Assembly (NCBI RefSeq): GCF_032191835.1
Contig: NC_083243.1
Span: forward strand, 67,270,001-67,334,000
Direction of reading: 5' to 3'
Source: Heteronotia binoei
Lineage: Eukaryota
Length of the DNA stretch: 64,000 nucleotides
Shown here: piece by piece, positions 2,777 to 63,638 of the stretch
Numbering within the stretch: position 1 is the first letter of the stretch
Layout: each line of letters opens with the position of its first letter
Position numbers and translations under genes: made by a program
Notes under the pieces: generated by a model
Seen by the model: only the letters and a program-made list of their open reading frames with translations
Told to the model about the DNA's origin: nothing
Database searches by the model: none

Positions 2777-3800
2777 TGATGGTTCTCATTGTTGTAGTGA
2801 GTTGGTCTTCAAGTTTGTAAACATGGGGGCTGTTGAGCCACACTGAAGCACTGTATTCCACAGTCCTATACACCATGCCTAAATCTAAGTGTTGTAGCAG
2901 ATACATACCAAGTTGTACCACATAATTTTTGGAGAAAGTTGTTTTGTGTGCATAGTTTCATTGCTACTTTGATAAGATGCTGTTTATAGTTCATGATCCT
3001 GTCCAGGGTAATTCCAAGGTACTTAGCAGTGTTCCCTCTAAACTGAGTTAGTGTGAGCTAGCTCACACTTTTTTAGCCTCTGACTCACACATTTTAGTCT
3101 TAGCTTTGGAAGGATGGCCTCAGAGCAAACTAATGTATGCAGCAGCCACATTGCTCACTGACAACATTAACGCTAGTAGCTCTCAAAGTAGAATTTTTGC
3201 TCACAAGACTCCACAGGCTAGATGAAGCATTGGTACTTAGGTGTGTGGTTGTTTGTACACTTAGTACCATTAAGGTATAACTTCAGTTAACAGTTGGCAA
3301 TATTGTTATTGAGATGAAACAGGAGCATTCTGTTTTTCCTAGACTTGGAATGAGTGGCCATTTACAGACAGCTAAAATGTTGAGGTTCCTAGTCAGTATT
3401 TCCTCTGACCTTCATTCAGTTCGTGCCGTACAGTAATCACCATGTCATTAACATAAGCAAACTTTCTGAATATCATCTTATGAACACCAGAGATGTATAG
3501 ATTGAAAAAGAAAATGAACCAAGGACCAAGTCTTGAGGTAGCCCATTATTCAGTTTCTTCTGTTTGCTGATTGACTGACTCATAATTACTTGGAAAGTTC
3601 TATCACTCAGCATGTTATTTAGAATTTGGAATAATGTTCTGCAGTGGAAAACTTGTAAAAACTTGTACAGCAGACCATCCCTCCAGATTGTGTCATAGAC
3701 CGCAATTCTATCTAGTCTTCTCATGGTGTACCCTGGATAACCCTAAAGAGCTAGAACTTCTGGCTGCTAGACAAATCTCTTGGCTACACTACACACATGG
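2777..3800 (-). mobile_element. Decayed Vingi/Ingi-like (I-group) LINE RT fragment, interrupted by a MITE
   Basis: Minus-strand pieces YDTIWRDGLLYKF, LNNGLPQ, KFAYVND, PKYLGITLDR, VEYSASVWLNSPHV occur in RT order with stops and frameshifts. The clade call rests on motif resemblance only. Confidence 0.7.
3027..3232. mobile_element. hAT MITE (CAGTGTTCCCTCTA family)
   Basis: Perfect 8-bp TSD GTACTTAG at 3019-3026 and 3233-3240; imperfect TIR. A related copy lies at about 36092-36270. Confidence 0.9.
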
Positions 3801-4099
3801 AAACTGGGCATTGAGTGTACTGGGTGGATAAATATAATGCTGAAGTTCACTGAAGTTCTTAGAGGTGAATCTTCAAACAATAAATAACTTCCTTCCATTG
3901 GATAGCATGTATGAGGCAGAGGTGACACCACACCATAATCCCATTTCCCCCTTCCTTGCCATTTACATTCCAAAACAATGGGAAAAGTGACAAATACAAT
4001 AGGATTTTAGAGTTTCTGAAGTATTTTTTATACATCACCTCAGTACCCATAGTCATAATCCTGTAAAAATACACCACATGTCTATATTATCATTACCAT

Positions 4100-4225
4100 A
4101 TTACAGGATAAGGGGAAGGTCAAAGTTGAGAAACAGCCACGTGCCTAATGGTGCCTAATGAGGTGAGATTTGGACCAGGGCTTCCTGGTTCCCAGCTTCA
4201 CTGCAGCTACACCATGCTAGCTATC
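4100..4225 (-). mobile_element. Old tRNA-derived SINE fragment
   Basis: Reverse complement begins with a degenerate A-box/B-box head (CATGGTGTAGCTGCAG...GGGAACCAGG). Confidence 0.45.
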
Positions 4226-23222: not shown

Positions 23223-24358
23223 CAAAGCAAGTGCAGACTGATTTATCACTAAAGAGATGTACTGTTGTATTTTGTTGATAAACAATTCTTGAAATTTCCT
23301 TAGATGTATTACATATTACAGTTAATGATGAACAATAAACCTTCACCAGATTTCATGATTTTCAAGCCAAACGTTGTCTGCCCAGTGTTCTTACCTGAAT
23401 CTTTCAGGAAACAGCTAAGCAAACTGCATGAAAATCAAAATATTCCTCAGCATTTTCTCTTTTACATAAATCACCAAACTTGATTTTTAATTCTTTTGAG
23501 AGCTGCAGTGTTGGAGCTACCACATATGATCTGGTCAGCTATTCTAACACATCTTTGTTATGCCATTATTGATTTGTTATAATGGGTCTATGTACAATTT
23601 ATACAAACAGTAGATACCAGTTGCAGTATTCATTAACCACTTATCTCTTCTCTACATCCATGCCAATTTTTTTTTCAGTCTCTCCCTCCCACTTAATTTA
23701 TCCTTAATCAAAATTCCTTATATGTTAGATACTTTAGACTCTTGTGTTTGAATTTCCCTACTCAGTTAAAACAGGAAGATAGCTCTGAAGAGTGGAGAGA
23801 TCCTTGGACTAGTGTGTTAAGAAATTGCCTTTTAAATCCAGAGGAGCCAGTTAAAACTCAAGAAGAGTACTGGTGTGTTTAGTGAAGGAGTTTGTGTACT
23901 GGGCAGAGTATCCCTGCCTTCTGGAAACCAAAAGAACCAGATATGCTCAAGAAAGTATACTGGAGTGTTTGGGAAACACTGAAACAGAAGTCTTTCATTT
24001 TATTTTAAGTCATTATGAAAAGTTTAAGAAATTCTCAGTTGCTTGAAACATATGAACTATAGTCTGTGTCTATATTGATTTATCTCAGAAATTTTACCCT
24101 CATTTCACCTGACCTTTCCCTTCATTTCATGGTTTAAGTTAAAGGGGACCTCAACCCTTTCCTCAGGTTTCTGGGCTGAGCCAGCAGCAAAATTTCATAC
24201 TGTGACAAGGTGGGCCAGCCATGGTTATGCAAAAGGGAAAAAAAGAAATAAATAGGGCTGCTCAATCAGAAAGGGAGAGAAAAATGGAAGAGGTCATCAG
24301 ATACATATTAGTGAAACAAAATAAACAGAATTTCAGGTTTTCACGGCTGGTAACAACA

Positions 24359-24519
24359 TTAGGGTTTGTAGAGTCTTTCGGGATCAAGTGCCGTGTTCTA
24401 CTGGAGAAAGTTTTCCTTCCAGACGTTTCGTTCTCCGCAGCTGAGAACGAAACGTCTGGAAGGAAAACTTTCTCCAGTAGAACACGGCACTTGATCCCGA
24501 AAGACTCTACAAACCCTAA
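24359..24519. repeat. Perfect palindrome (two 77-bp arms, 7-nt loop) derived from a Penelope-like element terminal repeat, containing the 3' half of a hammerhead ribozyme on each strand
   Basis: 24359-24435 is the exact reverse complement of 24443-24519. The centre reads GTTCTC-CGCAGCT-GAGAAC-GAAACGTC, i.e. stem II, the GAAA core and a GUC triplet. Confidence 0.9.
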
Positions 24520-25112
24520 AAATAAACAGGCATTTTCTTATGGTTTAACTTGTTTTTTCTGGTGCTGTACACATTTTTTGTGAGATTCAACTTTTGTTGA
24601 ATAAATTGGTGTTTTGGAAAGAGGTGGTTAGAAAAATGTTTATGAAATTATTTAATATCTGTCTGAAGAGATTGTTTTCTTCTTCTGCCACTGTTCTGGC
24701 ATCATTTTTTTTTACTTCCTCACTAAGTGATTGCAGACAATTGGAGATCATGTAGGGAGCAAGATGATGCCATGGCTTCATGTAGCCAATAATATTTAGT
24801 TTTGTAATGATATCTCTGAGGGTAAACAAAGTTCTCCCATTTTCTTACCTGTTGCCTCAGCAACCATACAGATACCCACCATGGTAGTACACTCATTACC
24901 TGCCAGAACTGTGTGGTAATTCTGCACATAATTATATATAACTACTTGGGGCAGCATGTGGATGGAGATGTAATTCAAATGCACATCCATATTCAGTACA
25001 AACTAGTCAAATAAAATGAATCAGAAGAAGGAAAAATGGCTCAGTTGCCTCAACAATTAGGATATATTCCCTTTTCTCTTGACTATCATCTCTTTGAAAA
25101 TCATATAAAGCT

Positions 25113-25904: not shown

Positions 25905-26180
25905 NNNNNNNNNNNNNNNNNNNNNNNNNNNNNNNNNNNNNNNNNNNNNNNNNNNNNNNNNNNNNNNNNNNNNNNNNNNNNNNNNNNNNNNNNNNNNNNN
26001 NNNNNNNNNNNNNNNNNNNNNNNNNNNNNNNNNNNNNNNNNNNNNNNNNNNNNNNNNNNNNNNNNNNNNNNNNNNNNNNNNNNNNNNNNNNNNNNNNNNN
26101 NNNNNNNNNNNNNNNNNNNNNNNNNNNNNNNNNNNNNNNNNNNNNNNNNNNNNNNNNNNNNNNNNNNNNNNNNNNNNNNN
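25905..26180. other. Assembly gap (276 N)
   Basis: N run; ORFs spanning it are artefacts. Confidence 1.
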
Positions 26181-28682: not shown

Positions 28683-28875
28683 GTGTTATTAAAATCACAG
28701 AGTTGGAAAGGACCTCCAGGGTCATCTAGTCCAACCTCCTGCACAATGCAGGAACTTCACAAATACCTCGCTCACACACATGCATCCTCAGTGACTCCTG
28801 CTGTATGGGCAGAACATGGGAAAGACCTCCAGGATCCCTTGCCAAACTGGCCTGGAGAAAAAATGCTGACTTACT
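28683..28875 (-). mobile_element. CR1 LINE 3' end (continues at 32385-32570)
   Basis: AGAGTTGGAAAGGACCTCCAGGGTCATCTAGTCCAAC is the reverse complement of the CR1 tail seen on + at 42925-42980. Confidence 0.8.
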
Positions 28876-29740
28876 TGTTGTGTATGCGGACCAAAGTGAA
28901 GACTTATCTGTGTGTTCCTGCTGGGTTCATTGGAGCCATAAGGACTGAGCTTGGGAACTCGGGAACAATGGGCAGCAGGATCCAAATCCCTGCTGCCCTG
29001 CTCCACTTACGGGGCCCCTGCTGGTTTGAATGATCCAATAACGTGCTTGTACAGGAACCCTGAGTTGTACGTAGTTGGCCCTGTGGGCCCAGTTAGCCAG
29101 TCTTTTGAGTTCAGCCCTATACTGTGCTGTACCTTAGTGGTTCCCAACCTCTGGGCCCCAGACCGATGCCAATCCATGGCCCATCAGCAACCAGACCACC
29201 AGCCTCACTGCCTCCCCATGGCGCCCTGCAGCCTCTCACCCCCCCCCCATGTCACCTCCGCCTCCCTCCGTTTTTATGATATTAAGCCGGGGAAAGAGCT
29301 TTCTGGACTCTTTAAAAGCTCACCCCCACCCCCACGGATCAGCTGATCCTGAGGGAAAACAGTGGCAGCAGTGGGGAGTGACCACTGAACAAGTGGCACT
29401 GCCCTTGCCTCCGGAGGCAAGGGCAGCGCCGCTTGTTCAGAGGATTGCTCGCTGCTGCCGCCACGGAGAGGGGGTGAGCTAGAGCCCTGTAGGCGCTTTC
29501 CCTGTTTAACATCATAAAAATAGAGGGGGGAGGAGGCGCTGCAAAGGGGGCAGGGTGGTGAGGATGCATGGTGTGGGGGGAGGCCAAATTCAGTTTCCCC
29601 ACCCTGCTAGCCCTGGGGCCGCAGTGGGTGGGCCGGCAGGTCCCTGGTGCCAAAAAGGTTGGAAACCACTGCTGTACCTAATAAAGAGCTATGATCACTA
29701 CCACCTCGCCTCTTCCTTGTGTTGAACCCACTATATTATA
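28876..29740 (+). mobile_element. 5' LTR of a Ty3/Gypsy element, split by a MITE
   Basis: Starts TGTTGTG; AATAAA at about 29680; followed by a degenerate PBS-like segment and gag. The right boundary is approximate. Confidence 0.65.
29135..29671. mobile_element. Charlie/Buster-type hAT MITE
   Basis: TIRs TAGTGGTTCCCAACCT / AGGTTGGAAACCACTG; perfect TSD CTGTACCT at 29127-29134 and 29672-29679. Confidence 0.93.
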
Positions 29741-32380
29741 GTGATGATGAGAATGGGATCTGGATGAGTGAAGCCCAGGACCAACAGGCATCGACCAAGC
29801 TCCAGCGCCGCTGTGCAACTGACACCAACACCCAGCCCAACCATGGCTGCTGCTCCCAGAATGCACGGCTACATCCGGGTGTTCAACCCAGACCACCTCA
29901 AAGACTTGGACACCTGGGAGAAGTGGCTGATCTACTTCATCCGGTACTATAAGATCACCGATGAAGACCAGAAGTCGCTCCTGCTCAGCATCTGCGGTAT
30001 AGCAACCTTGCAGTTGGCTGAGGGCTTCATCTCTCCTGCCACACTCAAGGATGCCATGTACAAGGCGATAGTGGAGAAGCTAACCAACCACCTTTTGTCC
30101 AAGCCAACACTCACAACCAGATGCATTGAATTTTACAAGTGGAACCAGAGGCCATGGGACACTGCCACTGTTTTCCTTGTGGAGCTCCGCCTCCTGACCC
30201 TACATTGTGCATTCTTGAACCTTGAAGGAGCCCTACTTGATCTTTTCATTACCGGCCCCCAGGATGAAAAGATGCAGCGAAAGCTGGCGATCCACAAGGA
30301 CCTCACATTAACTAAAGCATTCAGTGATGATGACGCTTACGAGAAATCACACAAGAAGAGACTCATGATCGGGGTACACCAGGCCGCCATTGCATCTGCC
30401 TCAGAGGACTCCGATGGCGACGACACCCTCAAACTTAACCATGCGGCTTCGAAGCACCTGTCACCATGTGCCACTGAAACAGCGCTTGCCTGAGAGTGTG
30501 CCAGCTGTGGGGAGCCCTACGAGCACTGCTCCTGCAAATTCCAGGATGCTGTTTGCAACCAGTGCAGAAAGACAGGCCATCTGGCACAAGTTTGCCATTC
30601 CAGATCAACCCACCAGTCATCAAGGGGAGCAACGAAGTGACAAAATGGCGGACCCCATGAGGTCAGCATTGTAGAGGAACTGCACTCCCTCACAGCAATG
30701 ACCAGTCAGGTATGCCAACTTTCTATTCCCTCCCCAGAAAAACTTAAAACCACAGTCCAAATAGAGGGTGCTCCATGCAAAATGCAAATAGTCTCAGAGG
30801 CCACCTATACAGTCATCTTGGCCCAGACTCTCAGACAACTGTGCCTTGGGGGACCCCAGCTGCACCATTCCCAGTCATTGTCCAGGACTTCCAGAAGCAG
30901 GAAATTGCCATACTAGGGGTCGGGCTTTTCTGGGTAATTTACAGACAGTTGTCAGGAACTCTACCCTTGCTAGTGGTGGATGGGAAGCTTTGTAGCTTAT
31001 TAGGCCGGGCTTGGTTTGGTCCCTTGGGAATTCGGGTGACGGGAATCCACCAGACCCCCACAAGCATGAATTTTCAGCAAATTTATGGGGAGTTCCCATC
31101 CATGTTTGATAGGAACCTAGGGACTTATACGGGTTCCCCAGTAGCATTGCAGCTTAGCCCCAACATGCAGCCCATATGGCTGAAGGCCCAGTGCATCCCC
31201 TTTGCCTTGAAACTGCCTCGTGGCGCAAGGGGTTTTGAAGCCGGTCGCCAATGTACATTGGGATACACCCATAGTCACCCCAGTAAAGTCCGATGTCTAT
31301 GTTTGCATCTGTACAGACTATAAATGCACCTTTAACAGGGCACTATAGGACCATGCCCACATGGTCCCAGTGGTCAGCCACGTTTTGGAATCACTGGCAG
31401 GGGCTAAAATCTTTGGCAAGTTGGACTTGGCCCAGGCCTATCAGCTGCTCCCAGTAGATGTTGCCACAGTCAAGGCACAAATGATTGTAACATACAGGGG
31501 CGTTTTCAAAGTCAAGCACCTTCTGTTTGGGATCAGCGTGGCTCCGGGGGATTTCCAGAACTTAATGGACTGTCTTTTAAAAGGTATCCCTGATTATATG
31601 CTGATCACTGCCGCCACTGAGGAGGAGTTTACCTTCCACTTCTGCGCTTTGCTCCAGCATTTTGACTCCACGGGCCTGAAGGTCAAAAAGAAAAAGTGCC
31701 TCCTGGGGGTCCCAAAAATAGACTTCCTGGGCTACCCGGTGGATGCTGGCAGCTTCCACCCTTCTCAGGAGAAGGTCAGGGCCATCTGTGACTCACCAGC
31801 CCCCACAAACAAGGAGGAGCTGCAAGTCTTTCTCAGCCTCTTGAACTTTTACCACACCTTCCTACCCCACAAGGCAGCCATGGCTGAGCCTTTCCACAGC
31901 CTTCTGAACAAGAGGGCTCTGTGGGTTTGGGGCCGCCAGCAAGCCACTGCCTTCCAGGCGGCAAAGGATCTCATCACCTCCAACAGTTTGCAGGCACATT
32001 TCAATGAGCAGCTGCCTGTCATTTTGACCTGTGATACCTCTCCATATGGGGTGGGAGCAGTCCTAGCGCACGTGCTGCCTGACAGCTGAGAGGTCCCAGT
32101 GGCTTACTATTCCAGGTCCCTACAGAAATTGGAGTGCAACTATGCACAGATTGTTAAGGAGGGTCTGGCCATGGTAGCGGGAGTCAAGATGTTTCATAAT
32201 TACCTTTATGGCCAGCCCTTCACCCTCCTCATGGACCATAAACCCTTCCTGGCCTCTTTGCCTCCTACTGCCAAATGCCCCAAATGCTGTCACCGTCTTG
32301 CAGTGGTCCATCTTCCTAGCAGGGAACCAATACGCCCTCCAATACCACCCGGGGAAGGCAATGGGTCACACAATGGGCCA
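29741..32380 (+). mobile_element. Decayed Ty3/Gypsy (Mag-like) gag-pol, truncated after RNase H
   Basis: Gag (LLLSICG...ELRLLTLHCAF...KDLTLTKA), Cys/His knuckles CASCGEPYEHCSC and CNQCRKTGHLAQVC, degenerate protease (IEGAPCKMQIVSEAT), RT (KLDLAQAYQ, GISVAPGDFQ, FLGY) and RNase H (CDTSPYGVGAVL, KEGLA, DHKP). No integrase or 3' LTR. Confidence 0.92.
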
Positions 32381-44835: not shown

Positions 44836-47800
44836 CTCTCTCTCTTTCGGCTTGGCTTCGCGAACGAAGATTTAAGAAGGGTGCAATAGTCCACGTCTGC
44901 TGCAGGCTCGCTGGTGGCTGACAAGACCAATGCGGGACACGCAGGTCCGGCCACAGTGGCTGCAGGGAAAAGTCTGATTTAGGGTTGGTGCTGTAGCAGT
45001 GCGATTCTTCCTCAATCTCCTTTTGTCCTCAAGACCAGCTATGCGTGCGTTCTCAAAAGAAGAGACAGCCTGGTGGATGGTGTGCCTCCATGCTTTGCGA
45101 TCTGAGGCTAGGTCAGACCACTGGTGATGGTTGATGCGACAGGTGCCAAGGGATTTCTTCAAGGAGTCCTTGTACCTCTTCTTTGGTGCCCCTCTATTTC
45201 GATGGCCGGTGGAGAGTTCGCCATACAGGGCAATCTTGGGAAGGCGGTGGTTTTCCATCCTAGAAATATGCCCTGCCCAGCGCAGCTGCGACTTCAACAG
45301 CAGTGCCTCGATGCTGGTAACCTCCGCCCGCTTGAGAACTTCAGTGTTGGTCACAAAGCACTCCAGTGGATGTTGAGGATGGTGCGAAGGCAGCGCTGAT
45401 GAAAGCGCTCAAGGAGTCGCAGGTGATGACGGTATAAAACCCACGATTCGGAGCCATAGATGAGGGTTGTCATCACAGCCGCTTTGTAAACATTGATCTT
45501 TGTGCCTTTTTTCAGATGCTTGTTGCTCCACATTCTTTTGTGCAGTCGGCCAAAGGCACGGTTTGCCTTTGCCAGCCTGTTGTCAATCTCCTTGTCAATC
45601 TTAGCATCTGAGGAGATGATGCACCCCAGGTAGCTGAACTGCTGGACAGTCTTCAGAACTGATTCACCCACAGTGATGCAGGGAGGGTGATAATCTTCCT
45701 GGGGTGCAGGCTGGTGGAGAACTTCTGTCTTCTTCAGACTAACTTCTAGGCCGAATAGCTTGGCAGCCTCTGCAAAGCAGGACGTCATATGCTGCAGAGC
45801 TGATACCGAGTGGGAGACGAGTGCAGCATCATCAGCAAACAGTAGCAAACAGTAGCTCTCGGATGAGTTTTTCCATTGTCTTGGAGTGGGCAGATGTAGA
45901 CACCATCGTCATCATCTAGATCTACTGCGGCTCTTTGAAGCATCATCCTAAACGTTCCAAGATTTGCCACAGGCCTTTCCTGCTAACGGTATCGAAAGCT
46001 TTGGTAAGGTCGACAAAAGTCACATACAGAGCCTTGTTCTGTTCCCTGCATTTCTCTTGGAGCTGCCTGAGAACAAATACCATGTCGGTGGTGCTCCTGT
46101 TAGCTCTGAAGCCGCACTGGCTCTCTGGGAGGAGTTTTTCTGCAATGGCAGGCACCAGTCTGTTCAGGAGTATTCTGGCAAGGATTTTGCCTGCGATGGA
46201 GAGCAGGGTTATCCCCCGGTAGTTGGAGCAGTCTGACTTTTCCCCTTTGTTCTTGTATAGGGTGATGATGATTGCATCGCGAAAGTCCTGTGGTAATTTG
46301 CCTTGTTCCCAGCAGGTGACAAGTACTTTGTGAAGTGAGCTATGTAGTACTGTGCCCCCATGCTTCCAGATCTCTGGTGGAATTCCATCAACTCCTGCTG
46401 CCTTGCCACTTTTCAGTTGCTTGATGGCTTTAACAGTCTCTTCTAGAGTGGGGATCTCATCCAACTCTGTTTTCACTGGTTGAAGTGGGGTGAGGTGAAT
46501 TGCTGAATCTTGAACTATGCGGTTGGCACTGAAGAGAACCTGAAAATACTCCGACCACCGGTTCAATATGGATGCCTTGTCTGTGAGGAGCACTTGGCCG
46601 TCTGCACTATGCAAGGGACTCTGAGTCTGATATGATGGACCATATACTGCCTTCAGGGCTTCGTAGAACCCTCTTAAATCACCAGTGTCTGCACACAGCT
46701 GGGTTCTCTCAGCAAGCTTGGTCCACCACTCGTTCTGAATGTCTCGAAGCTTGCACTGGAGGTTGCTACATACAGCGCGAAAGGTTGCTTTTTTCCCAGG
46801 ACAGGAGGGCTGAGCAAGATGTGCTTGGTAGGCAGATCTCTTTTTCGCCAGTAAATCTTGGATCTCTTGATTGTTCTCATCAAACCAGTCCTTGTTCTTC
46901 CTTGTGGAGAACCCAAGGACTTCTTCAGAGATCTGCAGGACGGTAGTTTTTAGGTGTTCCCAGAGTGCTTCTGGAGAAGGGTCTGTGGGGCAACTGGGGT
47001 CCTTAATTCTTGACTGGAGTTTTGCCTGGAAGGCAGCTTTAACTTCGGCTGACTGGAGACTGCCAACCTGAAACTTCCTCCGAGGGATACCTCCTCTCCT
47101 GGGTGTGGGTTTAAAGTGAAGACGGAGACGGATGATCCGTATGACATTCTGCACTGGGCATTACTCGGGTGTGTAAGACATCTCGAAGGTCTCTCTGGCG
47201 CACCAGAATGTAGTTGATACGGTGCCAGTGCTTGGACCGTGGGTGCATCCAGGTTGTCTTCAGACTGTTCTTCTGCTGGAAGATAGTGTTGGTGATGGTG
47301 AGCTGGTGCTCCATGCAGAATTCTAGCAGGAGGCGCCCGTTGTCATTGCAGTTGCCAATGCCGTGTTTGCCAAGTACTCCTTTCCAGGCTTCCGAGTCTT
47401 TACCTACTCTGGCATTGAAGTCGCCAAGGATGATCACCTTGTCCTCTGTAGGGGTCTTCCATATGAGGTTGTGTAGATCAGCATAGAACTTGTTCTTTTC
47501 TGCAGGATCTGCTTGAAGGGTTGGGGCATACACACTGAAGAGTGTTGCATGCTGCTTGTTTTGAAGTGGGAGGCGCATAGACATGATGCGATCTGAGTGA
47601 CCTGTTGGCAGGTTTTCGAGTTTGGAGGCAATGGAGTTCCTGACCATGAAGCCAACGCCAGAAAGGCGGCTCTCACCCTTTGACTTACCTGACCAGTAGA
47701 GGGTATAGCCAGCACCGTGTTCTTGAAGACTACCTTCCTCAGGGAAACGGACCTCACTGAGAGCTGCTATGTCGATATTCAACCTGAGAAGTTCGTGGGC

Positions 47801-48721
47801 AACTAGAGCAGAGCGTCGTTCAGGGCGACCACTGTCTACTGTGTCAAGCATGGTTCTGATGTTCCAACACGCAAGCTTTAGTCTTTGCACACTTTGTGAG
47901 GCAGGTGCATGCCTTTTCTTTGTTGTTATTTTTTGACCGCAAGTAAGGATGCCCATTGACCGCGGCTAGCCAACTGGGGTGGAGGAGACGAGCTTTGTTT
48001 AGGCCACCTTTTCTAGGCCCCTCTCCGTGTGGAGCAAGTAGTGCTGTCCCTAGATAAGGCTGCTTGGTCATTCAGGGTGCTGCCGAAAAATGCTTTCGTC
48101 TCCGGGTTAGCATCAGGTGACCAATACCCTGAACCGCCTACATGCAGGATCGGGACTGCGGCTTCCAGTGGCACCTCCCACCTGCCGTTTCGCCCCTTGC
48201 CCATCGCTGCAGGACTTGATGCATTGTGGGTTGTGTATGTGGATATGCCCTTCAGGCCTGCGCAGAGGAATTTTTTAGGTGAAGCCCAGTGTGCGCGGTA
48301 CTGGCTCCACCCTTTCACCTGGGGGTCATCTGCCATGGCCCAGTAAGCCGGGACGCCGGCAACGAGTCCTCCAGGTGATAGGTGTTACATTAACGAGCTC
48401 TATCTGCCCGGGTTTGATGTTAGAGTTTTCCTTCTCTTAGGCTGGCAAGGTTGGTGGGCCCAGCCTGCCCATCTGGTTATACCACCGGACAATTCGGTCG
48501 CACCATGACGGAGCAAACTCTGTGAAAAATGGGGGGGGGGGGGACCAGCGAGAAGGTGTTGCTACGGATGCAGTAATGCAGGAGAGGCCATTGCAGTGAC
48601 CATCTGCCAGGCATAGCCAGACAGTGACCACGCGGCATTCACTACACCGGGAGAGGAGAGGCTATGTATTGCACATACACTTTCCCTGGGGGGGTAGGAT
48701 ACCCAGAGGGAGCCCCCCCCC
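44836..48721 (-). mobile_element. Full-length RTE-clade LINE (3886 bp), inactivated
   Basis: 12-bp TSD CATCAGCATCAT at 44824-44835 and 48722-48733; 5' UTR, APE, RT, C2H2-like finger and (GA)n tail are all present. Confidence 0.96.
44872..47956 (-). pseudogene. RTE ORF (APE endonuclease, RT, zinc finger), disrupted
   Basis: APE motifs WNIRT, LSEVR, SVYAPT, GDFNARVG, ECHTDH; RT FVDLTKAFD and FADD. Frameshift near 47140, two internal deletions, a 10-bp duplication and a 1-bp deletion relative to the copy at 1394-2776. Confidence 0.93.
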
Positions 48722-59789: not shown

Positions 59790-62700
59790 ATGTCTGAGTT
59801 GAAATTAATCTCTCTTAATTGTAGAGGCCTTAATAATGTTATTAAGGCCAAAAGACTCTCCTCTGCGTTAACAAAATTACAACCTGACCTTCTTTTTTTA
59901 CAGGAAACCCATATTAAAAAGACAAACTCAGACATCCTTCGTTCAAAATGGTTCCAAACACAGTTTATAGCTGCTGGCTCATCGAAGTCACGTGGCGTTG
60001 CTATTATACTATCTAGGAGAACTAGATTTGTCCTTTTGGCCCAAGAAGTTGACCCTCAGGGAAGATATATTTTCGTTAAGGGTATGCTTAATGATTCTTT
60101 ATTTACTTTGGCTTCCCTATACGCCCCCAACTCAGCATAACTTACCTTCATAAAGTCCACTTTATCTAGACTTGCCCTCTTCCAGGAGGGGGCAGTTGTT
60201 ATAGGTGGTGATTTTAACCAGATAATTGACCCTATCTGGGATAGATCTTTCAAGTCGCACCCCCCCACAACTGTTCCCTCCGCACCCCTGCAAACCATTT
60301 TTCAAAATTTTAATTTATGTGATATCTGGAGAATTCACAACCCTGGAGTTAAGGATTACACGTATTTTTCAGCTGTCCACAATATTTTTACAAGAATAGA
60401 CTATTTCCTTATTTCTCCCTCTTTATTGAACCAAATTTCCCATACTAATATTGGCCTCAGAACTCTCTCTGACCACGCTTGGTTAGAGTGCACGTTAAGT
60501 ACTGCCTCCCAGGATAAACCTTGTTATAATTGGTCATTGAATAGGTCACTTCTTTTAAATCAAGAATTTTGCACACAAATTGAGCAAGAGATCAATCTTT
60601 ATTTTGAAAACAATTCTGAGTGCGGGGTCTCTGCCGACATTGTTTGGGATGCAATGAAGGCTGTTCTGCGAGGCAAGTGTATTTCTTTGAATTCGGCCTA
60701 CAAAAAAAGAAAATTGGAGCTTAGCCAACATCTATTGGATAACATCAAATTATTAGAACAAAAGCATAAACAAACCTGTTCAAAAAAGATTTACCACAAA
60801 CTCTTGTTAGAAAGGAAAAAGTTAGATCTAATGGAATCCTCTACCATCAGGAAGAACCTTCTTTTTTAAAAACAGAGGTATTGGTACAATCACCCTCGCT
60901 CATTGAAATTATTATCTTGGAAACTCAGAAAAGAACTAGGGGAGAGACAAATTAATGTTATCATGGATCACACTGGTAAAAGGCATTCTTCTAATAAAAA
61001 AATCCTAGATGTTTTCCATGATTATTTTCAAAAGTTGTATACTTCAACTAATCCTTCTCCTTCTTCAATAGATCACCTATTACAGAACCAACCCATTCTT
61101 AATCGCCTATCACATGATCACCAACACTTTTTGGACTCTCCCATCTCCCCCATAGAGGTGCTTGACGCTATCAAATCTTCTAAGCCTAACAAAACACCAG
61201 GTAGGGATGGCTTGCCTTCAGAGTTTTACAAAAAATTTGGCCAGTCCCTAACTTCCCACTTTACTTCGATCTGTAATCTAGTGTTGGAGACTGGTTGTAT
61301 GCCCTCTTCATGGTCTCAGGCGAAAATAATTCTCATACCCCAAAAAGATAAAGACCTCTTAAATACCAAATCCTATCGCCCTATTTCTTTACTTAATAAC
61401 GACTATAAGTTATTTACATCCATCTTAACAGCTAGACTGAACAAAATCATTGGTTCCTACATCCATATAAATCAATCAGGATTTATACCAAACCGTGACA
61501 TTACAGACAATACGAGACAAACAATTAACCTAATTCAATATTGTACCTTCCAAAACTTTGAATCTTGTATTTTAGCCCTGGACATTGAAAAGGCCTTTGA
61601 TAGCATAGAACCACTTTTTCTTCGCATGGTCCTATACCATATGGGCTTTGGCCCAAAATTTATGAAGGTTATTGATTCCCTTTATTTGGACCCATCAGCC
61701 TTTTTACAAGTTAACGGTCAACAGTCCTCTGCGTTCAGTCTGGAGAGAGGGACACGCCAAGGCTGTCCCCTCTCTCCGGTTTTATTTGCATTGGTTATTG
61801 AACCGTTCGCAAACCTGATTCGTCTTTCTCCTGAAATCCCAGGCTTGTCGGTTCAAGGCTCCACATTTAAAATTAGCTTATTTGCCGATGACATAGTTTT
61901 ATATATTTCAAATCCTCTGCAATCCTTAGACGCTATCTCCACTCTTTTAGACAATTTTGGTAAACTCTCTGGACTCCAAGTCAACCATTCTAAATCTATT
62001 CTTTACCCAATCAATATTTTTCCTAACTCAAAGAAAGAAATATCCACCAAATATCCCTTCCATTGGGTAACTGAAAACTGGCCATATTTAGGGCTAAAAA
62101 TCCCTTTAAATCTCTCCAATTTATTAAAGACAAATTATAGTGCCACTTTATCAGACATTTCTATTACTTTGAAACAGTGGGACAAATTGCAACTGTTCTG
62201 GATGGAAAGAATCCAAACGGTCAAATCCTTTATTTTCCCACGTTTGTTATATCTGTTTCGGGCCCTTCCCATTGTGATACCTCAAAAGATGTTAAACTCC
62301 TGGCAACAAACCTTGACTTCCTTCATTTGGAAGTACAAAAAAGCCAGAATCAAACTAACTACTATTTGCAGATCTAGAGCAAAAGGAGGTCTGGCGGTCC
62401 CAGACATTACTCGCTACTACAAAGCTGTTATTCTCTCCCAAATGACTAAAATTTTATATCAGCGCCCTCCCCCAGCATGGGCACTTATTGAAGAGGCCCA
62501 TTTTACTCCCCTTAAATATTACGAACTATTATGGCTCAAGAAAAATGACCGTCCTTTGTGGCATTTTGTAAACCCATTTCTTAAGGCACTTCTTTCTACA
62601 TGGGATTCAGAACGTTCTTACCTTGCCCCAGGTTTTTCTATCATTGCTTCGTTTATCGGTCAAAAATGGTTTCTCCCGGCCCAACTCCCCTCTTCTTTTA

Positions 62701-63638
62701 AAACTTGGCGAGACTCCTCAATTGTCTTCCTTTTTGACCTCCTTTCCTCTTCTAGGCAAATTCTACCCAAAGATAAATTAGACCAAAAATTACTAACCCC
62801 ATTGCCTTGGTTCCAATATTTCCAAATTAGATATCTTCTCCAAGACACCCAACTAAAATCGTCACTTTCCCGCCCAACGACAGATTTTGAACATTTGATT
62901 CTCCATTTGCAAGATAACGTGCAGTCAAAGGGGCTTATTTCACGAATATTTCGTATCCTTCTTACCAAATTGGAATCCTCACTTCCCTCTTACACGGCCC
63001 TTTGGCATAGGGACTGCGGGACCATACTTTCTCCAGACCAATGGGACTCTATCTGGGCTAGCGAAATTCTACACTCCAACATAATAAATATTTCACAACA
63101 GAACTTCAAACTTATGGCCCGTTGGTACCTTACTCCTACCCAACTTTCACATATGGTCACCTCGAACTCCCCTGATTGTTGGAGAGACTGTGGTCTCAAA
63201 GCCTCCTACATTCATTGCTGGTGGGATTGCCCCCAAATAAGACCCTTTTGGACTGCAATCTGCTCTCACCTTTCAACTTTATTGGATACCATAATTCCTG
63301 AAGACCCCACTGTGATACTTCTTAATCATTGGCCCGGTTCTAAATTGTCACCTTCGAAAAGATCTCTAATTGCCAAACTTTAAACAGCTGCAAAAACAAC
63401 GGTAGCCCAATCTTGGAAAAACGCTAACAACTTGTCCCTTGATACCTGGCTCCTGAAAATTTGGGACCATATAGCAATGGACAAAATCCAGGCGACATTA
63501 GACACTATTGACCCCTACCAGGCTTATTCCAAGTATATAGCGACCTGGTTCCCTATCTTAGAAAAAATCGATAGTGATCCATTTTATATTAATTCTTACA
63601 ACAAATCTAAATTATATAAAGTTTTTTTGTGGCTATAA
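59790..63638 (+). pseudogene. ORF2: L1 ORF2p (APE, RT, CCHC), 1283 codons with three in-frame TAA stops and no frameshift
   Basis: SLNCRGL, LQETH, GGDFN, RIDY, SDH; YRPISLLN, LDIEKAFD, RQGCPLSP, FADD, YLG; CWRDC...HCWWDC. Stops at 60138, 60867 and 63381; the track ORF pieces share one frame. Confidence 0.95.

Follow-up and report, generated by a model that had tools for sequence, protein, structure and literature searches.

The locus examined here raised the question of what kind of element leaves a perfect palindrome whose centre coincides with stem II of a hammerhead ribozyme, of which only one half is present, and how such a structure was made. The window, i.e., the whole stretch of DNA analysed, was 64,000 nt of the Heteronotia binoei contig NC_083243.1 (positions 67,270,001 to 67,334,000 of the forward strand), and all coordinates below refer to it. 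An earlier note on this DNA had proposed a Penelope-like element (PLE) origin, with cDNA snapping back on the stem II hairpin and priming itself. The sequence of the locus was compared with Poseidon_Ac (PAc), the Anolis carolinensis consensus from Frangieh et al. 2024 (PMC11167929). Reads from three WGS runs (one sample; about 1x, 0.6x, and 0.6x) and one RNA run (X19) were placed on 23990–24889 at ≥90% likeness; the sampled organism was taken as the species of the window from the ~1x coverage on the unique right flank alone.

Structure of the palindrome

The palindrome (24359–24519, 161 bp) was composed of three parts: (i) a left arm (24359–24435, minus strand), which was antisense, contained ~29 codons from the start of the PLE ORF together with the GAAAC–GUC half of the hammerhead, and had the stem II 5′ strand GTTCTC at 24430–24435; (ii) a 7-nt spacer CGCAGCT (24436–24442, plus strand), which was hammerhead loop II in sense orientation, contiguous with the right arm; and (iii) a right arm (24443–24519, plus strand), a sense copy with the stem II 3′ strand GAGAAC (24443–24448), GAAAC (24449–24453), and GTC (GUC in RNA; 24454–24456), followed by ORF codons and ending at the tail-less reverse transcription (RT) start site (...AACCCTAA). 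The two arms were exact reverse complements over 77 nt with 0 mismatches, just as the earlier note had described them, and the symmetry was broken only at 24436, 24439, and 24442, all within the spacer. Pairing ended abruptly beyond the arms, with the outside bases unpaired. The RNA fold of the palindrome was calculated at −153 kcal/mol (z = −25.7 vs. dinucleotide shuffles), and a transcript of the locus from either strand would be a 77-bp perfect hairpin. No second copy of the arm was found within the 64-kb window, and a 26-nt piece of it gave 0 matches in exact-pattern scans of metagenome and viral contig collections.

Target-site duplication and limits of the insertion

The sequence AAATAAACAG was found at both 24319–24328 and 24520–24529, making a target-site duplication (TSD) of 10 nt, or 11 nt with A24318 and A24519 counted (left copy AAAATAAACAG at 24318–24328, with its 10-nt core at 24319–24328). 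Between the left copy and the left arm lay a 29-nt PLE "tail" (24330–24358, minus strand), present on the antisense arm only, and A24329, which was ambiguous as an extra base or the last tail base. The TSD, AAA(A)TAAACAG in AT-rich DNA, abutted both family-defined termini (see below) once this one-sided tail was included. The statement in the earlier note that no TSD was visible was therefore wrong; the duplication lies beyond the asymmetric 29-nt left extension. Chance predicts 0.36 occurrences of the 10-mer in the window, which contained three; two of these abutted element ends, and none of 200,000 random flanking 10-mer pairs at the same spacing matched.

Because the TSD abutted both family termini, the insertion was tail plus palindrome (24329/24330–24519; reported length 201 bp) and not just the 161 bp of the palindrome. 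It consisted of two head-to-head copies of the 3′-terminal insertion unit of the element (ORF start plus hammerhead 3′ half): one copy had the tail terminus, the other the tail-less one, and the sense 5′ ends of both met at the palindrome centre, giving a head-to-head inverted 5′-truncated copy. A complete PLE insertion could hardly be smaller: the locus was a minimal "solo" insertion in head-to-head form.

These limits bear on a palindromic MITE or fold-back DNA transposon, or a miRNA-like hairpin RNA gene, either of which is scarcely credible here. The inverted repeat is long and perfect and has a sub-threshold Rfam mir-2041 match at 46.5 bits, as would suit them, but there was no TSD directly at the palindrome edges 24359 and 24519, the duplication standing outside the asymmetric 29-nt tail; the arms were PLE coding sequence; most family reads were non-palindromic and extended into CTGAGGAT; and the miRNA scores (mir-2041, 46.5 vs. 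gathering 70 bits; mir-4659, 45.5 vs. 92) were such as any perfect hairpin obtains. The MITE TSD types TA, TTAA, TWA, and 8-bp were considered at the palindrome edges and rejected on inspection.

Relationship to Poseidon_Ac

The left arm plus 24330–24358, read in sense, aligned to nt 16–120 of PAc with 69 identities in 95 positions (73%) and a score ~12 sd above 2000 shuffles, which supported the PLE origin claimed in the earlier note. The alignment covered the hammerhead 3′ half, the ORF start, and the tail, and its common blocks included GAAACGTC, CCCGAAAGAC, ACAA(C)AACCCT, and CC(A/G)GCC(G/A)TGAAA(A/G)CCT; the tail, equivalent to PAc nt ~85–119, aligned as CCAGCCGTGAAAACCT in the locus against CCGGCCATGAAAGCCT in PAc. 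The arm in frame read FSAAENETSGRKTFSSRTRHLIPKDSTNP (NVVTSRENLK), where PAc read MPAIDVGETSGENASGTWPHSPKDIQQP..., and the same frame gave ..ENETSG..IPKD.. in the locus and ..VGETSG..SPKD.. in PAc, with ETSG and PKD in common. In both elements, the ORF began at the first bases of stem II. Homology and shared frame thus identified the arm as the beginning of a PLE ORF plus the hammerhead 3′ half, although the locus belonged to a different family from PAc, with stem II, the loop, and about 27% of positions differing.

The single TTAGGG/CCCTAA hexamer that the earlier note had remarked on at the arm ends was indeed present, but a telomeric meaning was unlikely: the outer CCCTAA represented the codons AAC CCT AA(T) and hence was not a telomeric repeat. 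The telomere-repeat reading was rejected on the ground that the hexamer was single and lay in element coding sequence (AAC CCT AAT), at a place where the PAc homologue read AACCCTGTG.

No ORF for telomerase-like RT plus GIY-YIG endonuclease was present at the locus, which held the first ~29–38 codons only, as expected for a 5′-truncated copy. Nor was an autonomous PLE parent found in the window, whose RT ORFs were of LINE or LTR type without GIY-YIG. On balance, the locus is best taken as a short, dead-on-arrival insertion of a high-copy Poseidon/Penelope-type PLE, made in one retrotransposition event, presumably through two-strand priming (see below).

Hammerhead motif in the parent family and at the locus

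The parent family, as reconstructed from reads, had the motif CUGAGGA, an unpaired U between positions 9 and 10.1, GUUCUC–CGCAGCU–GAGAAC, and GAAAC–GUC, with ACGU for helix III. Minimal type I PLE hammerheads are characterised by an unpaired base between positions 9 and 10.1, G10.1–C11.1, a 6-bp helix II, and a palindromic ACGU instead of helix III (Cervera & de la Pena 2014, PMC4209133), and the parent family showed every listed trait. The parent family carried a complete minimal PLE hammerhead, while the locus kept its 3′ half only. CUGANGA just upstream of GTTCTC, predicted for intact copies in the earlier note, was present in 3152–4207 DNA reads per run.

At the locus, helix II with G10.1–C11.1, followed by GAAA and the GUC triplet, was present at 24430–24456; compared with the minimal type I hammerhead, the CUGANGA box and the helix I 5′ strand were missing on both strands. 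No CTGANGA occurred in either strand of 24300–24560, and no CTGANGA..GAAAC motif occurred anywhere in the window. Rfam hammerhead models gave no match at E ≤ 10 in 23800–25100 and none at gathering score in the whole window. With its catalytic CUGANGA box missing in both strands, the locus was not a ribozyme. Its description in the earlier note as a half ribozyme with the symmetry centre at hammerhead stem II was correct, GTTCTC/CGCAGCT/GAGAAC occupying the centre and GAAAC and GTC following it.

In the right arm, the cleavage site would come after 24456. Hammerhead self-cleavage as the origin of the centre was considered and rejected, because the centre lay 18–26 nt 5′ of GUC. No pile-up of inverted joints or RNA ends was seen in the reads at 24456/24457.

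Anatomy of the family in sequencing reads

Depth on 24330–24519 was ~2000–2700 per mate orientation, compared with ~1 on the unique right flank, and the PLE family therefore comprised several thousand copies. Directly 5′ of 24430, the family consensus was CAACGCCACTGAGGAT, seen in 4207, 3231, and 3152 DNA reads of the three runs plus 102 RNA reads with an agreement of 0.92–0.95; the 4207 reads, from run X24, ran on 5′ of 24430 as ...CACTGAGGAT. Upstream of 24430, the loose ends of reads entering from that side gave the consensus ...GCAACGCCACTGAGGAT, whose mirror image was seen behind 24448. Family reads crossing from CTGAGGAT into GTTCTC–CGCAGCT–GAGAAC agreed with the sense loop orientation at the locus.

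Two kinds of family terminus were recognised: (i) a terminus with the tail at 24330, marked by 2640 loose reads in X24, and (ii) tail-less termini at 24357/24358 and 24519/24520. Reads past 24519 often went on with TGATGTTAC, which was the tail start, and some reads beyond 24330 went on as ...ATCAAAG, presumably from longer copies extending into the ORF. The two termini, about 30 nt apart, are interpreted as two alternative PLE 3′ ends that match internal RT start sites, and PAc likewise has two RT start sites with this spacing.

Family transcripts in the RNA run X19 covered 24330–24519 in both mate orientations at roughly 50–100x. Family RNA passed the hammerhead uncleaved, the 102 RNA reads extending into the sequence 5′ of stem II, and no RNA-end pile-up was present at the GUC site in this run, as is also reported for PAc (PMC11167929). 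Within the sequencing-run index, no run contained the unique flanks of the insertion, and runs of several organisms contained two or three of nine sampled words of the arms-plus-tail stretch only.

An assembly artefact, in which a chimeric or fold-back read made the palindrome, is very improbable. Assemblies are known to have difficulty with the inverted structures of PLEs (PMC8557442), and the unique-flank coverage was ~1x with short reads only; against this, a complete insertion with TSD, tail, and family termini lay inside unique flanks on both sides, and single short reads appeared to pass from the arms into both flanks (bins 24290–24319 and 24530–24559).

Two-strand priming as the proposed source of the palindrome

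In PAc, both target strands are cleaved and extended, and the two internal sites at which RT starts bound the tail (PMC11167929); this two-strand priming was seen in vitro only, in an element 73% identical to the family of the locus. Applied to the present family, both-strand cleavage and two RT starts together would account for one tailed arm and one tail-less arm, a staggered-cut TSD, and head-to-head orientation. In the proposed sequence of steps, the PLE protein would cut both target strands with a 10–11-nt stagger, and RT of element RNA would be primed by each 3′ OH, from the distal (tail) start in one case and from the proximal (tail-less) start in the other. Once stem II had been copied, both cDNAs would stop at the counterpart of 24430, 1 nt short of the CUGAGGAU core; the 19-nt stem II ends of the two antisense cDNAs would then anneal, and each would be extended on the other to give a perfect palindrome centred on loop II. 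The resulting three-position loop heteroduplex would be resolved to one orientation, either orientation being possible. Annealing is placed at the 19-nt stem II ends since pairing between two antisense cDNAs requires a self-complementary stretch. That top- and bottom-strand cDNAs become joined is a proposal made here and lies outside the in vitro work on PAc.

Stem II begins at position 24430 (PAc +3), one base short of the core, and read junctions clustered there, although this pile-up could partly represent one amplified structure. Blunt 24430|24430 head-to-head joints with no shared letters were found in 32, 13, and 20 reads of the three libraries and scaled to roughly 40 genomic copies, accompanied by near variants running from 24430 to 24431–24437. 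Because snap-back cannot put a joint outside the hairpin loop, the blunt joints implied two cDNAs both ending at 24430. The paired 19-nt cDNA ends were calculated to form a −16 kcal/mol duplex, compared with −3 kcal/mol per hairpin (DNA). The core must be unfolded for RT passage, as suggested by Frangieh et al. (PMC11167929, Fig. S2C legend), and the locus hints that the 5′ edge of stem II is a frequent stopping point of RT.

The main competitor, namely that a single cDNA from one target strand folded back at the stem II hairpin and primed itself, with the ends made by trimming or repair, is possible but rather doubtful. A cDNA ending at 24430 was predicted to have a flush 3′-terminal stem II hairpin (GTTCTC/GAGAAC) in both the MFE and centroid structures, perfect arms would follow automatically, and Arkhipova et al. 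2013 (PMC3846280) inferred self-priming from palindromes at PLE inverted junctions. Other inverted joints in the reads (24409>24412 and 24405>24417, with 2–5 shared letters) lay in the loop of a second predicted cDNA hairpin; they are compatible with hairpin-guided joining, though fold-back during library construction may have produced them instead. The points against a single cDNA are these: the loop orientation makes the tail-less right arm the primary cDNA, whose copy could not carry the 29-nt left tail; the inverted right-flank copy that would be expected was absent; the blunt joints in the reads were incompatible with it; and the stem II hairpin is weak as DNA. A pre-formed snap-back cDNA with tails on both arms, one of them lost by endonuclease "resolution" (PMC8557442), would give the same product.

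Under both models, the self-complementarity of stem II set the centre of the palindrome. The proposal of the earlier note that stem II was the inversion point held at the locus, but stem II was not the only pivot, as the reads showed other inverted junctions; its snap-back self-priming was plausible, but it was not the best fit to the tail asymmetry and the loop orientation, and the idea had already been published (PMC3846280). Two-strand priming with annealing at stem II is accordingly the reading we lean towards over single-cDNA snap-back. What is new here is that the palindrome pivot is the ribozyme stem II, that tail asymmetry and loop orientation fit two-strand-primed cDNAs better, and that junctions in the reads concentrate at the initial base of stem II.

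Identity of the arms and age of the insertion

The locus carried minority alleles of the family at mirrored positions of the two arms: the locus allele was present in about 2% of family reads at the pair 24373/24505 and in about 20% at the pair 24383/24495, while that at the pair 24415/24463 was present in about 53%. In the tail, a difference at 24356 was shared by about 3% of family reads. Since each minority allele occurred in both arms and was carried by other copies as well, the two arms share a single template lineage, a minor subfamily. The ongoing arm-to-arm conversion suggested in the earlier note was not needed to explain arms that share alleles occurring in ~2% and ~20% of reads.

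Fold-back template switching is known to occur at short inverted repeats, of which stem II is one. The palindrome could on this basis have arisen by post-insertion inverted duplication of a 5′-truncated PLE, through fork template switching or hairpin-mediated repair at stem II, with conversion keeping the arms identical. The proneness of such repeats to template switching and the perfect arms agree with this, but it is improbable: both outer ends were canonical family termini with abutting TSD, duplication would not recreate a tailed terminus inside the TSD, and the shared minority alleles (present in ~2–20% of family copies) make conversion unneeded.

The 0 differences at 77 paired positions and the intact TSD point to a young insertion, which at typical vertebrate neutral rates would probably date back a few million years at most.

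Comparison with known PLE and L1 structures

As a structure of a known kind, the locus was an ordinary outcome for a lizard PLE of very high abundance, and self-priming at PLE junction palindromes was already proposed in 2013. A "typical Penelope structure" comprises an inverted 5′-truncated copy, a tail at one end, and a short TSD (Arkhipova et al. 2013, PMC3846280), and PLEs in general were described likewise by Craig et al. 2021 (PMC8557442). The locus resembled Pen2a_Av of Adineta vaga (PMC3846280) and the general PLE scheme (PMC8557442) in having a head-to-head inverted 5′-truncated copy in an AT-rich target, and it resembled typical Penelope/Poseidon elements in having the optional ~30-bp tail at one end only, a TSD of about 8–12 bp, and a palindrome at the inverted junction. 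Unlike typical Penelope/Poseidon elements, it had no ORF body or direct pLTR between inverted copies; it was made up of two 3′-terminal units (77 nt each), so that the whole insert was one palindrome plus the tail.

In L1 twin priming, reportedly described by Ostertag and Kazazian in 2001, a second priming on the other target strand is said to produce an inverted 5′ segment within one TSD, with a microhomology junction. Both the second priming on the other strand and the inversion within one TSD-flanked insertion find their likeness in the two-strand priming favoured for the present locus. The two differ in that the parts of RNA copied in L1 do not overlap, whereas here both arms copied the same segment to give a true palindrome, and in that the "microhomology" here was a 19-nt self-complementary hairpin sequence.

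Implications for PLE retrotransposition and annotation

The formation of PLE tandem and inverted structures was called "undefined" in PMC8557442. The locus is an in vivo footprint matching the 2024 in vitro findings of both-strand priming and two RT start sites (one per arm), and it also carries a staggered double-strand cut (TSD) and a cDNA-to-cDNA joint at self-complementary sequence. The thousands of young copies in the genome would permit a junction census weighing two-strand priming against snap-back.

A wider reading, which is speculative and seems to us a long shot, is that the conserved hammerhead motif of endonuclease-bearing PLEs serves DNA joining as much as RNA cleavage: its core, folded or bound by protein, would stop RT at the initial base of stem II, and stem II would let antisense cDNAs from opposite target strands pair and prime each other. 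If true, such a joining role would give PLEs their characteristic head-to-head inverted repeats, and it would help explain why the hammerhead is retained although its cleavage is dispensable for PLE insertion in vitro and cleaved ends were unseen in vivo (PMC11167929).

For annotation, perfect hairpins of such type are PLE debris and not ribozymes, miRNA genes, or MITEs, and PLE mini-palindromes in transcribed DNA are potential sources of hairpin dsRNA. The Rfam mir-2041 consensus, aligned to 24401–24477, has ACGUUUC and GAAACGU mirrored about a short central stem, as in the palindrome; mir-2041 itself might be derived from a PLE fold-back, the match being sub-threshold (46.5 vs. 70 bits).

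Surroundings of the locus

The left flank (24020–24290) was moderately repeated, with a depth of 5–40 in the ~1x WGS reads and many fixed differences; the repeat stopped near 24290, about 30 nt before the TSD. No convincing exon was found in the gene context of the palindrome. An 80-aa ORF at 24587–24829 (minus strand), about 70 nt from the palindrome, had a weak COG4_C Pfam match (E = 0.033, below cut-off), and a neighbouring ORF at 24796–24990 (minus strand) ended at a donor-like site CAG|GTAAGA; these two ORFs may be exons, which would place the hairpin in an intron. At 25905–26180, 1.4 kb downstream of the palindrome, 276 consecutive N marked a gap or mask.

Three other retroelement regions were recognised in the window. 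The ORFs at 28683–31323 gave no Pfam match and lay upstream of an LTR-type retroelement fragment at 31361–32089 (plus strand) that comprised RT and RNase H (RT_RNaseH_2). Adjacent ORFs at 45943–47956 (minus strand) contained an AP-type endonuclease (Exo_endo_phos) as well as the first part of an RT domain and represented a second LINE, apparently frameshifted. An uninterrupted 826-aa ORF at 60903–63383 (plus strand) contained RVT_1 (E = 2.8e-35) and, at the C-terminus, an L1-type Cys/His motif; without a GIY-YIG domain, it was not a PLE and was possibly a young LINE copy.
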